A stretch of DNA of 64,000 nucleotides. It comes from Macrostomum lignano. Lineage: Eukaryota. Made by a program: the position numbers and the translations under genes. The stretch covers positions 1 through 64,000 of the forward strand of contig NIVC01001758.1 in assembly GCA_002269645.1 (NCBI GenBank), in the 5' to 3' direction. The notes below the pieces were generated by a model. That model saw only the letters and a list, made by a program, of their open reading frames with translations. It did no database searches and was not told where the DNA came from. Of the stretch, positions 49,234 to 53,553 are shown one piece after another (positions within the stretch are counted from its first letter, which is position 1; each line of letters opens with the position of its first letter).

Positions 49234-49906
49234 ATGTCAATTCGAGCCCTGCTAGCGGTGCTGCTAGCTCTGATAGTATCGGCCGCTGCTGTGAGATCCA
49301 ATGAGCCATATTTGAGCATACAAAAGTTGGCCAGGTACCACTCGGACAGCCTGCTCAGATTTCTCTGCATCGCCGGACCTGACGACAGACTCCCCATCAG
49401 GCTTCACTGTGGGCCCAGCCGCAAGGTCTGCTACGAGAACTGCCAGAAAACTTTGCAGTGCTCAGCAGATCCGCTGTGCTCCGCGTCCACCTGCGAGCGG
49501 CGCGACTGGCCCGATCGGGGCGAGTTCGTCCTGGGATTTTCATTCTTCGGCGACGTCAGCGGCGGCGTCTTCGAGTGTCGGTACATGGGTCTGGTTCGAC
49601 GGTTGGAGGTTGCGTCAGCTGCTGCTGCTGCTAGTAGCAGCTCTTCTGTGACGCCGGAGACTTCCACAGCAACAGCAACGACAACAAAAGCAACAACAAC
49701 AACAGCAACAACAACAACAACAACAATGCTACTAAATACGCTGAAGACAAGCACAGAAACTGCAATGGCCAGTCCAACTTTAACGACTGCTTCTACTAGC
49801 GCGGTTGTTGACGAGGTCCCGAGCTCGAGTCCGCCGATAGAGCCGGACAAGAAGACTATGAACAACAATGATGTTGATGAGCGGTCGTTTCTCACCAAGT
49901 TTAGCT
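49234..49906 (+). CDS. Type I membrane protein, exon 1: signal peptide, 8-Cys Ig-like domain, Thr/Ser-rich stalk
   Basis: MSIRALLAVLLALIVSAAAVRS signal; FLC ... FVLGF...DVSGGVFEC; poly-Thr stalk; donor AGCT|GTGAGT (phase 1). Confidence 0.85.
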
Positions 49907-49980
49907 GTGAGTGACATTCATATGGGGCTTGTGCCACTAAAGTTCACATCACACTCAATTGGGGCCAACCCCTTAGAGGT

Positions 49981-50120
49981 GACAGAGCCTGTACATGCCT
50001 GACGATTCGAAAGCCATCAGGGCCGCTGTACACCCTGTGTGAGCTGCGTGTGCGAGTGCGCGCCTGTCGTACAGTATTTGCACGCTTGCATGTTGCTCAG
50101 GAGTCAGCGGAATGGGCAGC
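49981..50120 (+). repeat. Dispersed repeat, copy C (SINE-like body), in intron 1
   Basis: TGTACATGCCTGACGATT...TACACCCTGTGTGAGCTG...GCTTGCATGTTGCTCAGGAGTCAGCGG. Confidence 0.75.
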
Positions 50121-50335
50121 ATCGGTACTTAGTACCAACTCAATGACCTTTCAGTGACCTTATAGTGTATTGTATACGTGTACTTAAACTACGGTTGACA
50201 AAAATAATTGGATTTTCAAGTTTTTCGTAAGATGGGTGGACAGGGTTCAATTGGCTCTTGGCTGTGATCTCAGCACTCAGTGGCATTTCGGGATGAATAC
50301 ATTGAAATTTTCGCTTTAAAAAATTTCAGTTCCAG

Positions 50336-50422
50336 TAATTCTGCTTGCTTGCATTCTGGCCGTGTTGTGCACCATCGTTATTGTGGTGCCATTCAGCCTC
50401 TGCCTGCTCATCTGCTACAGAA
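50336..50422 (+). CDS. Type I membrane protein, exon 2: transmembrane helix
   Basis: Acceptor TTCCAG|, encodes LILLACILAVLCTIVIVVPFSLCLLICYR, donor AGAA|GTGAGT; 87 nt, phase 1-1. Confidence 0.85.
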
Positions 50423-50544
50423 GTGAGTTCACGTCAGTTTGTATGCACTTTAATGTTTTAAGGTGGGGGAGAAAAAGACGGATGGGTGTGGAAAAAGCAA
50501 GACTAAGGAAATGAGATAAAAATTAAGGTACAGAGGGGGGAGGG

Positions 50545-51455
50545 AGAAGTGGTAGACTGGGGAGAGAGGTGGTAGACTGGGGAGAGAGGTGGTAGACTGG
50601 GGAGAGAGATGGTAGACTGGAGAGAGAGGTGATAGACTGGGGAGGGAGGGGGATAGACTGGGGAGAGAGGGGGTAGACTGGGGAGAGAGGTGGTAGACTG
50701 GGGAGAGAGATGGTAGACTGGAGAGAGAGGTGGTAGACTGGGGAGAGAGGTGGTAGACTGGAGAGAGAGGTGATAGACTGGGGAGAGAGGAGGATAGACT
50801 GGGGAGAGAGGGGGAGAGAGGTGATAGACTGGGGAGAGAGGGGGAGAGAGGTGATAGACTGGGGAGAGAGGGGGATAGACTGGGGAGAGAGGGGGAGAGA
50901 GGTGATAGACTGGGGAGAGAGGTGGTAGACTGGAGAGAGAGGTGATAGACTGGGGAGAGAGGGGGATAGACTGGGGAAAGAGGTGGTAGACTGGGAGAGA
51001 GGTGATAGACTGGAGAGAGAGGGGGATAGACTGGGGAGAGAGGGGGAAAAAGGTGATAGACTGGGGAAAGAGGTGGTAGACTGGGGAGAGAGGTGGTAGA
51101 CTGGGGAGAGAGGTGGTAGACTGGGGAGAGAGGTGGTAGACTGGGGAGAGAGGTGGTAGACTGGGGAGAGAGGTGGTAGACTGGGGAGAGAGGTGGTAGA
51201 CTGGGGAGAGAGGTGGTAGACTGGGGAAAGAGGTGATAGACTGGGGAAAGAGGTGATAGACTGGAGAGAGAGGTGGTAGACTGGGGAAAGAGGTGATAGC
51301 CTGGGGAGAGAGGTGGTAAACTGGGGAGAGGGGTGATAGACTGGAGAGAGAGGTGATAGACTGGAGAGAGGGGGGGATAGACTGGAGAGAGAGAGGGAGA
51401 GAGAGGTGATAGACTGGGGAGAGAGGGGGATAGGTGATAGACTGGGGAGAGAGGG
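50545..51455. repeat. G-rich ~20-bp minisatellite (AGGTGGTAGACTGGGGAGAG)
   Basis: Tandem units in intron 2. Confidence 0.95.
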
Positions 51456-52399
51456 AGTATATAAGGGTTATACAAGTAAAATATAAATAAAGCATTTTAA
51501 TATTGAAATTCACGCCTCAGAGGTTTTATTAATAAGATTACAGTAGAATGTAGTCATGCACAATAAGTGACAATATGCATAATAAAGTGAATTAACAACC
51601 TAACGCACTCAAAAGCTGCCCAATGTGAGCAGGACTTAATATAGAAAGCTTTACGCAATTTAATGAAAAACTTTGGACCCAATGTCAAACTGAATGCCAC
51701 TTCATTGGAACTCAAGCCCTGTCTGTCTGCTCTCTGCAATTGTACAAACACATTGATAAGACATTAAAAAAGAGTTGAGTTGGCCAACACCGAAAACAGG
51801 ACGCGATATTGGATTCAGTATCTGCGCTATCTATCCGCCCGTTCTGTCAGGCAGAGAATGAATAGCATGCAAGCTTTCTCGGCGGCTTGGCCGGGTTTGT
51901 TTCTACTTTTTTGGTCATGTCGAACTGATCACAAACATACTGGGGTGGGGACTGATAAATTGCCGACTCCCTAGAGGTTTCCAGTATAGGAATTTCTGCA
52001 ACAGTTGTTGCTTGCTTTTTCTTCTTTGTCGGCGAATCTGTACAACAATTTCTGGCATGAAACTACATCTATCTAGTCTAAGCTTAGATCTGCTGAGCTC
52101 CACATCCATGTCCTTTGTTAGCTTCTTGCGTCAGTTGCAATCGTGTCTTGCTCCCCACCGCGATCCTCCGTTATTGTAAAGATTTTTTAGCATCGAATCA
52201 TCGCCGACCCTGGATTTCGGCGAGCGTTTCGCCCTCCCAACCATGCAGATCCAGTGACCCGACCAGTTTGTTGATGGTGTTTAACAAACAAGAACGTGAA
52301 AGAATTCAATGGTTTCTATACTAATAGTAGTTGATGAAAGGACAAATTATGTCCTTTTGAACATTCTCTCATTTGGTTAGTTAGTTCTTTATTTAGTGA

Positions 52400-53280
52400 C
52401 TTATTTAGTTAGTTAGTTAGTTAGTCAGTCAGTTAGTTAGTTAGTTAGTTAGTTAGTTAGTTGGTTAGTTAGTTAGTTGGTTAGTTAGTTAGTTAGTTGG
52501 TTAGTTAGTTAGTTAGTTAGTTAGTTAGTTGGTTAGTTAGTTAGTTAGTTAGTTAGTTAGTTAGTTAGTTGGTTAGTTAGTTAGTTAGTTGGTTAGTTAG
52601 TTAGTTAGTTAGTTAGTCAGTCAGTTAGTTAGTTAGTTAGTTAGTTAGTTAGTTAGTTAGTTAGTTAGTTAGTTGGTTAGTTAGTTAGTTAGTTGGTTAG
52701 TTAGTTAGTTAGTTAGTTAGTCAGTCAGTTAGTTAGTTAGTTAGTTAGTTAGTTAGTTAGTTAGTTAGTTAGTTAGTTAGTTAGTTAGTTAGTTAGTTAG
52801 TTAGTTAGTTGGTTAGTTAGTTAGTTAGTTAGTTAGTCAGTTAGTTAGTTAGTTAGTTAGTTAGTTAGTTAGTTAGTTAGTTAGTTAGTTAGTTAGTTAG
52901 TTAGTTAGTTAGTTAGTTAGTTAGTTAGTTAGTTAGTTAGTTAGTTAGTTAGTTAGTTAGTTAGTCAGTCAGTTAGTTAGTTAGTTAGTTAGTTAGTTAG
53001 TTAGTTGGTTAGTCAGTTAGTTAGTTAGTTAGTTAGTTAGTTAGTTGGTTAGTTAGTTAGTTAGTTAGTTAGTTAGTTAGTTAGTTAGTTAGTCAGTCAG
53101 TTAGTTAGTTAGTTAGTTAGTTAGTTAGTTGGTTAGTTAGTTAGTTAGTTAGTTAGTTAGTTAGTTAGTTAGTCAGTCAGTCAGTCAGTCAGTCAGTCAG
53201 TCAGTCAGTCAGTCAGTCAGTCAGTCAGTCAGTCAGTCAGTCAGTCAGTCAGTCAGTCAGTCAGTCAGTCAGTCAGTCAG
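52400..53280. repeat. (TTAG)n microsatellite grading into (TCAG)n
   Basis: Seen directly; abuts the exon 3 acceptor. Confidence 0.98.
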
Positions 53281-53296
53281 CCCCTCCCCACCGCAG

Positions 53297-53553
53297 GAGC
53301 CAGCCGACAGAGCAGCAGACAGCGAGCACCGCCAGAGGAAGCGCAGCTCAGAGAAGTGCGGAAGTGCCAGCCGAGCCGAAACGAATATGTCATGGCTGAT
53401 AGCGTCTACGAGCCTCTGGACTTTGGGCCGACTGAGACCAGCTCGGCAGCATCAGAGAGACAGTCACCAGGAGAGCAGGTGTCCGTTTATTACTCAGCTG
53501 GAGGGGCGCTGTTGCCAGCCCTAGGCGAGGAGACTGTACGCTTGAGCAGCTGA
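53297..53553 (+). CDS. Type I membrane protein, exon 3: cytoplasmic tail with Tyr motifs
   Basis: Acceptor CCCCTCCCCACCGCAG|GA in matching phase. Encodes RASRQ...NEYVMADSVYEPLDFG...VSVYYSAG...RLSS*. Spliced product 338 aa. Confidence 0.78.

Follow-up and report, generated by a model that had tools for sequence, protein, structure and literature searches.

A Macrostomum lignano orphan gene encoding a type I membrane protein that combines a cysteine-rich head, a mucin-like stalk and a tyrosine-bearing tail

Here we describe a three-exon gene of the flatworm Macrostomum lignano whose product, a single-pass membrane protein of type I, consists of a cysteine-rich head on a mucin-like stalk, one transmembrane helix and a tyrosine-bearing tail. 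The gene lies on the plus strand at positions 49234-53553 of the DNA analyzed, a stretch of 64,000 nucleotides from scaffold NIVC01001758.1 (the window). Our preferred interpretation, to which we assign a probability of about 0.6, is that the product is an orphan M. lignano surface glycoprotein acting as a receptor in surface recognition or adhesion, which can be internalized or can signal.

This is a real but uncharacterized gene, which entered GenBank with the Mlig_3_7 annotation of 2017. The annotated gene call on the scaffold spans exactly 49234-53553, and the 340-residue product of the spliced open reading frame is identical to PAA64354.1 (A0A267ETP6), "hypothetical protein BOX15_Mlig023900g1" of M. 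lignano. Exon 1 (49234-49906; 673 nt) ends at the donor GTGAGT. Exon 2 (50330-50422; 93 nt, phase 1-1), which encodes residues 225 to 256, is bounded by the acceptor ...TTTCAG and a second GTGAGT donor, and exon 3 (53297-53553; acceptor ...CCGCAG) encodes residues 256 to 340, the cytoplasmic tail, and the stop codon TGA at 53551-53553. Both intron 1 (49907-50329) and intron 2 (50423-53296) have GT/AG borders and are in phase 1; the latter consists mainly of tandem repeats, with a 20-bp unit present 46 times at 50544-51454 and a (GTTA/GTCA)n tract at 52376-53277.

The Mlig_3_7 GenBank annotation was built from a genome-guided RNA-seq transcriptome (PMC5730564); therefore, the exon joins, including that of exon 3, rest on transcripts. 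The sequence-only reading, which had joined exon 3 in the same way, agrees with this annotation. It had also placed the three exons and their phase correctly; however, its product length of 338 residues was wrong and corresponds to a second in-frame acceptor (50335/50336), 6 nt downstream of the first and unused by the annotated protein. Its proposal that domain boundaries coincide with introns holds for the transmembrane segment and the tail only, exon 1 containing the head and the stalk as well as the signal peptide. Upstream of the ATG, by 77 to 99 bp, the TATA-like elements ATATATAT and TATAATAT were read from the sequence at 49135-49157 on the plus strand and represent a possible core promoter. 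Long open reading frames elsewhere in the window mostly translate tandem repeats; the sole recognizable one is a PDZ-domain exon, and the neighboring frames provided no functional context.

The protein begins with a signal peptide (residues 1 to 19, MSIRALLAVLLALIVSAAA; 49234-49290, plus strand, including the start codon), which has a hydropathy of 2.26 over these residues and is modelled as a helix (pLDDT, 63 to 70); an A-x-A motif precedes the likely cleavage site. The head (residues 20 to 126; 49291-49611, plus strand) is predicted to be all or mostly beta and contains eight cysteines, at positions 45, 59, 66, 70, 76, 82, 87 and 115 (C-x13-C-x6-C-x3-C-x5-C-x5-C-x4-C-x27-C), six of which cluster within 29 residues (59 to 87). 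The Ala/Ser/Thr-rich, mucin-like stalk runs from residue 127 to about residue 217 and, with a juxtamembrane segment, extends to the end of exon 1 (49612-49906, plus strand). Serine and threonine make up 49% of residues 127 to 205, and the stalk has no N-x-S/T sequon, gives a weak match to the Pfam family "Mucin" (E = 0.072) and is disordered in the full-length AlphaFold model.

Exon 2 encodes the transmembrane helix (residues ~226 to 254), which lacks charged residues and reaches a hydropathy of 3.18, together with a CYRR stop-transfer sequence. An AlphaFold helix at residues 219 to 263 (pLDDT, 77 to 91) is the only confident part of the full-length model. The cytoplasmic tail, of 85 residues, has tyrosines at positions 286, 293, 320 and 321 and, judging from the model, is probably disordered. 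All of the elements that had been proposed beforehand, namely, a signal peptide, a head of about 105 residues with eight cysteines, a Ser/Thr stalk, a transmembrane segment with a juxtamembrane cysteine and basic residues, and a tail with four tyrosines, were seen in the hydropathy profile and sequence or, for the transmembrane helix, in the AlphaFold model.

No relative outside M. lignano was found when the full protein, the head alone and the protein with its stalk removed were compared with 5.8 billion clusters. The head alone yielded one candidate and no match, and an exhaustive phmmer search with the head among 1.84 billion representatives returned M. lignano copies only. As judged by these sequence searches, the gene is an orphan within all that was searched and encodes a lineage-restricted surface protein, as had been supposed. 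Since only M. lignano copies were found, there was no alignment for structure prediction or for motif conservation. An expanded, diversifying family of paralogues was not borne out: the only copies are near-identical ones that arose by genome duplication, some of them represented by frameshifted or fused models (P0003 and P0004), and tblastn detected no paralogue within the window.

A second genomic copy (L001, Mlig027518g1), about 98% identical, encodes the 99%-identical protein PAA71152.1 (BOX15_Mlig027518g1) and has the same exon structure and identical splice sites. The two coding sequences differ by four synonymous changes, one nonsynonymous change and one in-frame 3-nt indel; there are four differences in exon 3, all synonymous. 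The dN/dS ratio is about 0.08, and the probability of at least four of five changes being synonymous under neutrality is 0.016, both values being drawn from five substitutions only. Divergence is 0.5% in the coding sequence versus 1.7% in alignable intron sequence (Fisher P = 0.008), and identity is 99.5% in the coding sequence versus 96.5% in intron 1, with the flanks at 88 to 91%. Because the coding sequence of the duplicate differs almost solely by synonymous changes, this comparison points to purifying selection on the coding sequence.

Modelling suggests that the head may be an Ig-V-like domain with a six-cysteine insert at residues 59 to 87. Cys45 lies in an L-R-F-L-C context and Cys115, at a distance of 70 residues, in G-G-V-F-E-C; this arrangement matches Ig domains, in which the B- and F-strand cysteines are 55 to 75 residues apart in hydrophobic-x-hydrophobic-x-C and G-x-Y/F-x-C contexts. 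However, an Ig C-strand tryptophan would lie about 12 to 16 residues past the B-strand cysteine, and the sole tryptophan, residue 92, is 47 residues past Cys45. Furthermore, a Pfam-A hmmscan, run with the entire protein and with the isolated head, detected no Ig family (V-set, I-set, ig, Ig_2 or Ig_3) at an E value of ≤10. An Ig domain would form a two-sheet Greek-key beta-sandwich. Predicted by AlphaFold with no alignment, the head on its own is all-beta with nine strands, but its pLDDT is only 41; in the full-length model, in which the head has a pLDDT of 31 to 52, strands B, C, E, F and G are kept and a helix appears at residues 63 to 73. These two low-confidence models share strands at about residues 40 to 47, 54 to 59, 97 to 105, 112 to 117 and 120 to 125 and disagree over residues 60 to 92, which form strands in one and a helix in the other.

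Nearly all of the best 50 PDB matches listed by Foldseek for the head model (query pLDDT, 41) were Ig V domains (best E value, 8e-3; TM score, 0.37 to 0.53), in a list that is biased by the abundance of antibody V domains in the PDB, and no match reached an E value of ≤0.001. The earlier claim of an Ig-like fold is weakly supported by the contexts of the outer cysteines, the modelled strands and the V-like Foldseek list but not by the Pfam Ig profiles or the C-strand tryptophan.

Other identities for the head were considered and rejected. By inspection, the spacing of the inner six cysteines does not fit the EGF, TNFR-CRD, PSI, Ly6/uPAR, SRCR or somatomedin-B modules, and Pfam gave no match to them. 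Near-identical ML2-derived UniRef models bear the conflicting automatic names CUB, ZP, MUC5A and GPCR fusion; the first three are inconsistently applied to near-identical proteins, and none of these three is backed by Pfam. The CUB domain is a jelly-roll fold of ~110 residues with four conserved cysteines; the head of the model given this name (P0002) is left unnamed in A0A267ETP6, Pfam detected no CUB domain at an E value of ≤10, and none was among the best 50 Foldseek matches listed. The ZP module, after which P0006 is named, comprises ~260 residues with 8 to 10 conserved cysteines; there was no Pfam Zona_pellucida match at an E value of ≤10, and the cysteine-bearing region spans just ~105 residues. 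Comparison with PDB sequences gave nothing meaningful, the only match being PEPCK (E = 0.74), and Pfam searches yielded no meaningful family match, whether run with the complete protein, with the head or with the transmembrane segment plus tail.

In the tail, SVYEPL (residues 291 to 296; 53401-53418, plus strand) fits the ITIM pattern (S/I/V/L)-x-Y-x-x-(I/V/L) and contains the YxxPhi sorting motif YEPL. Among composition-matched shuffled tails, 15% contain at least one ITIM pattern and 51% contain YxxPhi. A scan of the tail for further motifs left this single ITIM-like match, with no ITSM or ITAM. The earlier observation that SVYEPL fits the ITIM consensus was right, but the significance of the match is not supported, given how often shuffled tails match.

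After a cleavable signal peptide, the predicted disulfide-rich, beta-rich head of about 105 residues is kept off the membrane by the Ser/Thr/Ala-rich stalk of about 90 residues, which we postulate to be O-glycosylated. The head would serve as a ligand-binding or adhesion module; its fold would most likely be an Ig-V-like sandwich, in which the outer cysteine pair would lie on the B and F strands and a three-disulfide insert would replace the C'-C''-D region. It can be envisaged that YEPL acts as an AP-2 endocytic signal or a phosphotyrosine docking site. Given these proposed roles of the head and tail, the protein would be a receptor for recognition or adhesion at the cell surface that can be internalized or can signal.

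The protein may instead be a membrane-tethered glycocalyx or trafficking protein of the sialomucin type, with a head that is a small non-Ig disulfide knot, a glycosylated stalk that provides the main barrier or antiadhesive function, and YEPL directing endocytic or lysosomal cycling. Like CD164/endolyn and the CD34/podocalyxin family, it combines a mucin-like region and a cysteine module with a single transmembrane segment and a short tail carrying a tyrosine-based sorting motif. The Ser/Thr content of the stalk, its lack of N-glycosylation sequons, the knot-like clustering of the cysteines and the failure of sequence profiles to detect any Ig family are all consistent with such a protein, and the two head models differ in exactly the cysteine-rich segment. 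However, the cysteine-rich module is N-terminal here, the mucin region is short, also beside the stalks of barrier mucins, YxxPhi lies inside the tail rather than at its C terminus, and there is no sequence similarity. Predicted strands flank the cysteine cluster, the outer cysteine pair is Ig-like in spacing and context, and the Foldseek list is V-like, with knot-like folds absent among the matches listed. Since YxxPhi is found in so many shuffled tails, YEPL carries no weight for or against this reading, which on balance we regard as unlikely.

We consider it very unlikely that the protein is a true TIM- or CD300-like inhibitory immune or phagocytic receptor, in which an IgV head would bind, for example, phosphatidylserine and phosphorylated SVYEPL would recruit an SH2-domain phosphatase. 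As in the TIM family (HAVCR1/TIM-1, TIM-3 and TIM-4), a type I protein has an N-terminal domain of ~105 residues with extra cysteines, a Ser/Thr stalk of the O-glycosylation type, one transmembrane helix and a tyrosine-bearing cytoplasmic tail. The mucin-like stalk that is a mark of the TIM family is also common to many unrelated proteins. Receptors of the CD8 alpha/CD7/TREM/CD300 type, with a single IgV domain on an O-glycosylated stalk, likewise share one small head, a Ser/Thr/Pro-rich stalk, a juxtamembrane cysteine, a short tail and an ITIM-like S-x-Y-x-x-L motif, and the uncharged transmembrane helix is that of inhibitory CD300A/CD300LF rather than of adaptor-coupled receptors. The V-domain-like Foldseek matches also favor this possibility.

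TIM IgV domains, however, have six conserved cysteines, one of them adjoining the F-strand cysteine, and an FG-loop/CC'-loop pocket that carries an Asn-Asp metal-ion-dependent ligand-binding motif; the FG motif that binds metal and phosphatidylserine is that of TIM-1 and TIM-4. Here, there are eight cysteines; six of them cluster between the putative strands C and E, no cysteine adjoins the F-strand one, and the predicted F-G turn reads R-Y-M-G-L, without Asn-Asp. The head and stalk share one exon, and there is neither a gene cluster nor the paralogue expansion typical of such receptor families. Unlike those of CD8 alpha, CD7, TREM and CD300, the head is matched by no Ig profile and has no C-strand tryptophan, the single ITIM-like match does not exceed chance expectation, and exhaustive searching revealed no homology. 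With no relative of any kind outside M. lignano, and no sequence similarity to Ig, TIM or CD300 proteins, among the clusters, representatives and PDB sequences searched, and without the TIM-type cysteine layout and FG-loop motif, the kinship with TIM/CD300 put forward earlier is not supported; the likeness to TIM/CD8/CD300-type proteins is one of layout only.

We consider it equally improbable that the gene encodes a fast-evolving reproductive or gamete-surface protein, whose orphan status would reflect rapid turnover as in Macrostomum reproduction-related genes. The absence of relatives outside M. lignano and an architecture suited to surface recognition would fit this idea; however, the two copies differ in a purifying rather than a diversifying manner, and the gene identifiers are absent from those entries of the neoblast/germline table in PMC5816591 that were searched, which is weak evidence. 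Neither Mlig023900 nor Mlig027518 occurs in any paper text searched or in the examined parts of the supplements of PMC5730564, PMC5816591, PMC12896417 and PMC5946080, and a search for a Macrostomum single-cell atlas gave nothing usable; these sources yielded neither expression nor functional data on the gene. Most doubtful of all is the possibility of a new Macrostomum-restricted Ig-V variant, with a three-disulfide knot for C'-C''-D and a working ITIM, that would be an independent flatworm inhibitory Ig, mucin and ITIM receptor with no sequence trace to vertebrate TIM/CD300.

In conclusion, this gene, taken at face value, is a further example of the many "hypothetical" surface glycoproteins restricted to one lineage that a repeat-rich invertebrate genome encodes. 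A new V-like head combined with real ITIM signalling would, if true, bear on how frequently Ig-mucin receptors have originated independently, a point for which the present evidence falls short. The value of the gene is modest and lies in a clean, RNA-supported orphan gene under apparent purifying selection, with a compact cysteine-rich ectodomain that no profile recognizes. Transgenesis, RNAi and in situ methods work in M. lignano, so the cell type and function of this protein could be found quickly.

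The gene model was obtained by reading region 48800-54000 directly and splicing candidate exons in silico. It lies on the plus strand, opens with an ATG at 49234, and comprises exon 1 (49234-49906, 673 nt, donor GTGAGT), exon 2 (50330-50422, 93 nt, acceptor TTTCAG, donor GTGAGT), and exon 3 (53297-53553, acceptor CCGCAG), with the stop codon TGA at 53551-53553. The lengths of exons 1 and 2 put both introns in phase 1 and make exon 2 symmetrical (1-1); the spliced reading frame encodes 340 amino acids without interruption. At 50324-50336, tandem acceptors (TTTCAG and TTCCAG) lie 6 nt apart, each in frame. 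The second (50336) would remove Phe-Pro where the transmembrane segment begins and yield 338 residues, but all of the database proteins take the first and none uses the second. The sequence-only reading was therefore correct in proposing three phase-1-spliced exons and an open product, but its length of 338 residues must be replaced by the annotated 340.

The product is identical, residue for residue, to PAA64354.1 (UniProt A0A267ETP6, found by cluster look-up), which is recorded as "hypothetical protein BOX15_Mlig023900g1." That gene model spans 49234-53553 on scaffold NIVC01001758.1 (assembly GCA_002269645.1), of which the window forms the first 64 kb; therefore, our finding matches the existing annotation exactly. 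The GenBank annotation of this assembly derives from a genome-guided transcriptome that drew on RNA-seq processed by StringTie and TACO, together with a de novo transcriptome and signals of trans-splicing and poly(A) addition (PMC5730564). The exon joins, including the previously proposed joining of exon 3, thus rest on transcript data. No expression data for the gene identifiers of either copy were found in the paper texts and supplements searched. The gene is real and was previously annotated as a hypothetical protein. TATA-like elements were read at 49135-49157, 77 to 99 bp upstream of the ATG, and AATAAA signals at 54058 and 54080, approximately 500 bp downstream of the stop.

A second copy, Mlig027518g1 (PAA71152.1; 341 amino acids, 99% identical), is located on NIVC01001183.1, where the surrounding DNA is approximately 98% identical to the window wherever it can be aligned. 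This copy fits the recent genome duplication reported for M. lignano (PMC10733133). The splice sites of the two copies do not differ, and the four substitutions in exon 3 are all synonymous third-position changes; the stalk carries one nonsynonymous change (A to T) and one 3-nt Ala indel. The resulting dN/dS ratio was approximately 0.08 (256 synonymous and 764 nonsynonymous sites; two copies, five substitutions), and the neutral probability of at least four of five changes being synonymous was 0.016. Divergence was 0.5% in the coding sequence versus 1.7% in alignable intron (Fisher P = 0.008) and 9 to 12% in the flanks. Small as these numbers are, they point to both copies being functional coding genes and to purifying selection on the gene.

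The protein comprises a hydrophobic signal peptide (amino acids 1 to 19, with A-A-A at its end), a head (20 to 126) with cysteines at 45, 59, 66, 70, 76, 82, 87, and 115 and its sole Trp at 92, a stalk (127 to approximately 217; 49% Ser/Thr over 127 to 205, plus Ala and Pro), a transmembrane span (226 to 254) followed by C-Y-R-R, and an 85-residue tail (256 to 340) with tyrosines at 286, 293, 320, and 321. No N-x-S/T sequon is present anywhere in the protein. The full-length AlphaFold model gave a confident helix at 219 to 263 (pLDDT, 77 to 91) and a disordered stalk and tail. These sequence features and the modeled helix bear out the original description: the gene is transcribed and encodes a type I membrane protein, probably glycosylated, with a mucin-like stalk. 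Exon 2 (amino acids 225 to 256) matches the transmembrane helix near-exactly; the claim that introns fall at domain boundaries holds for this segment and the tail but not for the signal peptide, head, and stalk, which all lie in exon 1.

The head had been read as Ig-like. On sequence, the 70-residue spacing from Cys45 (L-R-F-L-C) to Cys115 (G-G-V-F-E-C), and the contexts of both, are those of Ig B and F strands, and E-F-V-L-G-F-S-F, N-terminal of Cys115, looks like an E strand. AlphaFold modeled the isolated head as all-beta with nine strands (pLDDT, 41); the full-length model repeated strands at approximately 42 to 45, 54 to 58, 97 to 101, 112 to 117, and 120 to 125 (head pLDDT, 31 to 52), and the six-Cys segment (60 to 92) formed strands in one model and helix in the other. 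Nearly all Foldseek matches of the head model in the PDB were Ig V domains (nanobodies, VH, CD4 D1, and TCR V), although this list is biased because the PDB is overpopulated with V domains, and at a best E value of 8e-3 (TM, 0.37 to 0.53; model pLDDT, 41) none reached an E value of 0.001 or below. Pfam gave no Ig family at an E value of 10 or below, a PDB sequence search gave no meaningful match, and the canonical Ig C-strand Trp is absent from the head. We consider a V-like sandwich with a disulfide-rich insert to be the single most likely fold, at a probability of roughly 35 to 40%.

Membership of the TIM family, the CD300 family, or any other named family is not supported; the likeness to TIM and CD300 that had been proposed is confined to layout. 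This layout does not single out TIM, because CD8 alpha, CD7, TREM, and several sialomucins share it. TIM proteins have their own six-Cys pattern and an Asn-Asp ligand-binding motif, whereas the head has an eight-Cys arrangement (C-x13-C-x6-C-x3-C-x5-C-x5-C-x4-C-x27-C) and its predicted F-G turn (R-Y-M-G-L) lacks that motif. No relatives beyond M. lignano were found by word-index searches of 5.8 billion clusters, for which the queries were the complete product (which returned M. lignano proteins exclusively), the isolated head, and the stalk-less protein, or by an exhaustive phmmer scan of 1.84 billion representatives with the head as query. Word-index negatives with short queries are not reliable alone: head residues 21 to 128 gave one candidate and no hit, though three matching database proteins (P0001, P0002, and PAA64354.1, listed as P0005) contain them exactly; phmmer did recover P0002. 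No paralogue occurs within the 64-kb window and no diversified gene family was found in any database searched; the anticipated expanded, diversifying family is therefore absent. A CUB, ZP, or MUC5A identity, suggested by UniRef names of near-identical ML2-derived models, is rejected, since the names contradict each other and fail the Pfam test. The automatic names of P0002, P0003, P0004, and P0006 are CUB domain-containing, MUC5A, GPCR-domain fusion, and ZP domain-containing, respectively; P0003 and P0004 derive from further copies, as frameshifted or fused models; the head is frameshifted in both, and P0004 is joined to a rhodopsin-type GPCR model. Such models probably reflect errors of assembly or gene prediction in the older assembly.

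In the tail, SVYEPL (amino acids 291 to 296, nucleotides 53401 to 53418) is the sole ITIM-type match, and no ITSM, ITAM, NPxY, or acidic di-leucine motif was found. The motif fits the ITIM consensus, as had been noted, but among 20,000 shuffled tails, 15% had one or more ITIM-type matches and 51% a YxxPhi motif, so neither is evidence alone. An AP-2 sorting signal is an equally possible reading of YEPL. The comparison sequences for these motifs were near-identical copies only.

The surroundings are repetitive. The window is full of minisatellite arrays, with an unusual density of short-period tandem arrays (4- to 68-bp units; 39 TRF rows scoring at least 300), and its long six-frame reading frames are mostly repeat translations, such as the L/S/P-rich pseudo-protein at 55666-57423. 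Intron 2 is mainly tandem repeat, including 46 copies of a 20-bp unit (50544-51454) and (GTTA/GTCA)n (52376-53277). Two blocks of 42- to 46-bp units (GATAAGCAAGATGATTATCTGGGTGAGGTGGATGATTATGAAGA) occupy 53666-54404, the presumed 3' UTR or flank, which is just 88 to 91% identical to the duplicate locus. Arrays at 29308-29868 and 32377-37058 share a unit of approximately 31 to 32 bp in opposite orientation: GAGCGGAGAGGCAGATTCTCAAGCACTGAGG, when reverse-complemented, gives the unit of the latter array (4.7 kb, approximately 150 copies). The pair amounts to a large inverted arrangement of satellite DNA. Arrays of related 21-bp units, AGTGCCTGCGGCGCCAAAATG and GCTAAAATGAGTGCCTGAGAA, lie 22 kb from each other at 26657-26976 and 48463-48878, the second ending approximately 350 bp upstream of the ATG. 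The sole recognizable neighboring domain is a PDZ domain (Pfam PDZ_6, E = 2e-8), encoded by a minus-strand open reading frame (4522-5529) that probably represents an exon of a neighboring gene, and no tRNA genes were found in the window. The neighborhood gives no clue to function.

The most likely mechanism, we infer, is that of a surface recognition or adhesion receptor, in which the stalk would present the head, which is Cys-rich and possibly V-like, above the glycocalyx, and the Tyr motif of the tail would mediate internalization or phosphotyrosine signaling. This kind of architecture is widespread, and the databases already list the gene product as a hypothetical protein; follow-up would be cheap, given an orphan head domain and a tractable host organism.
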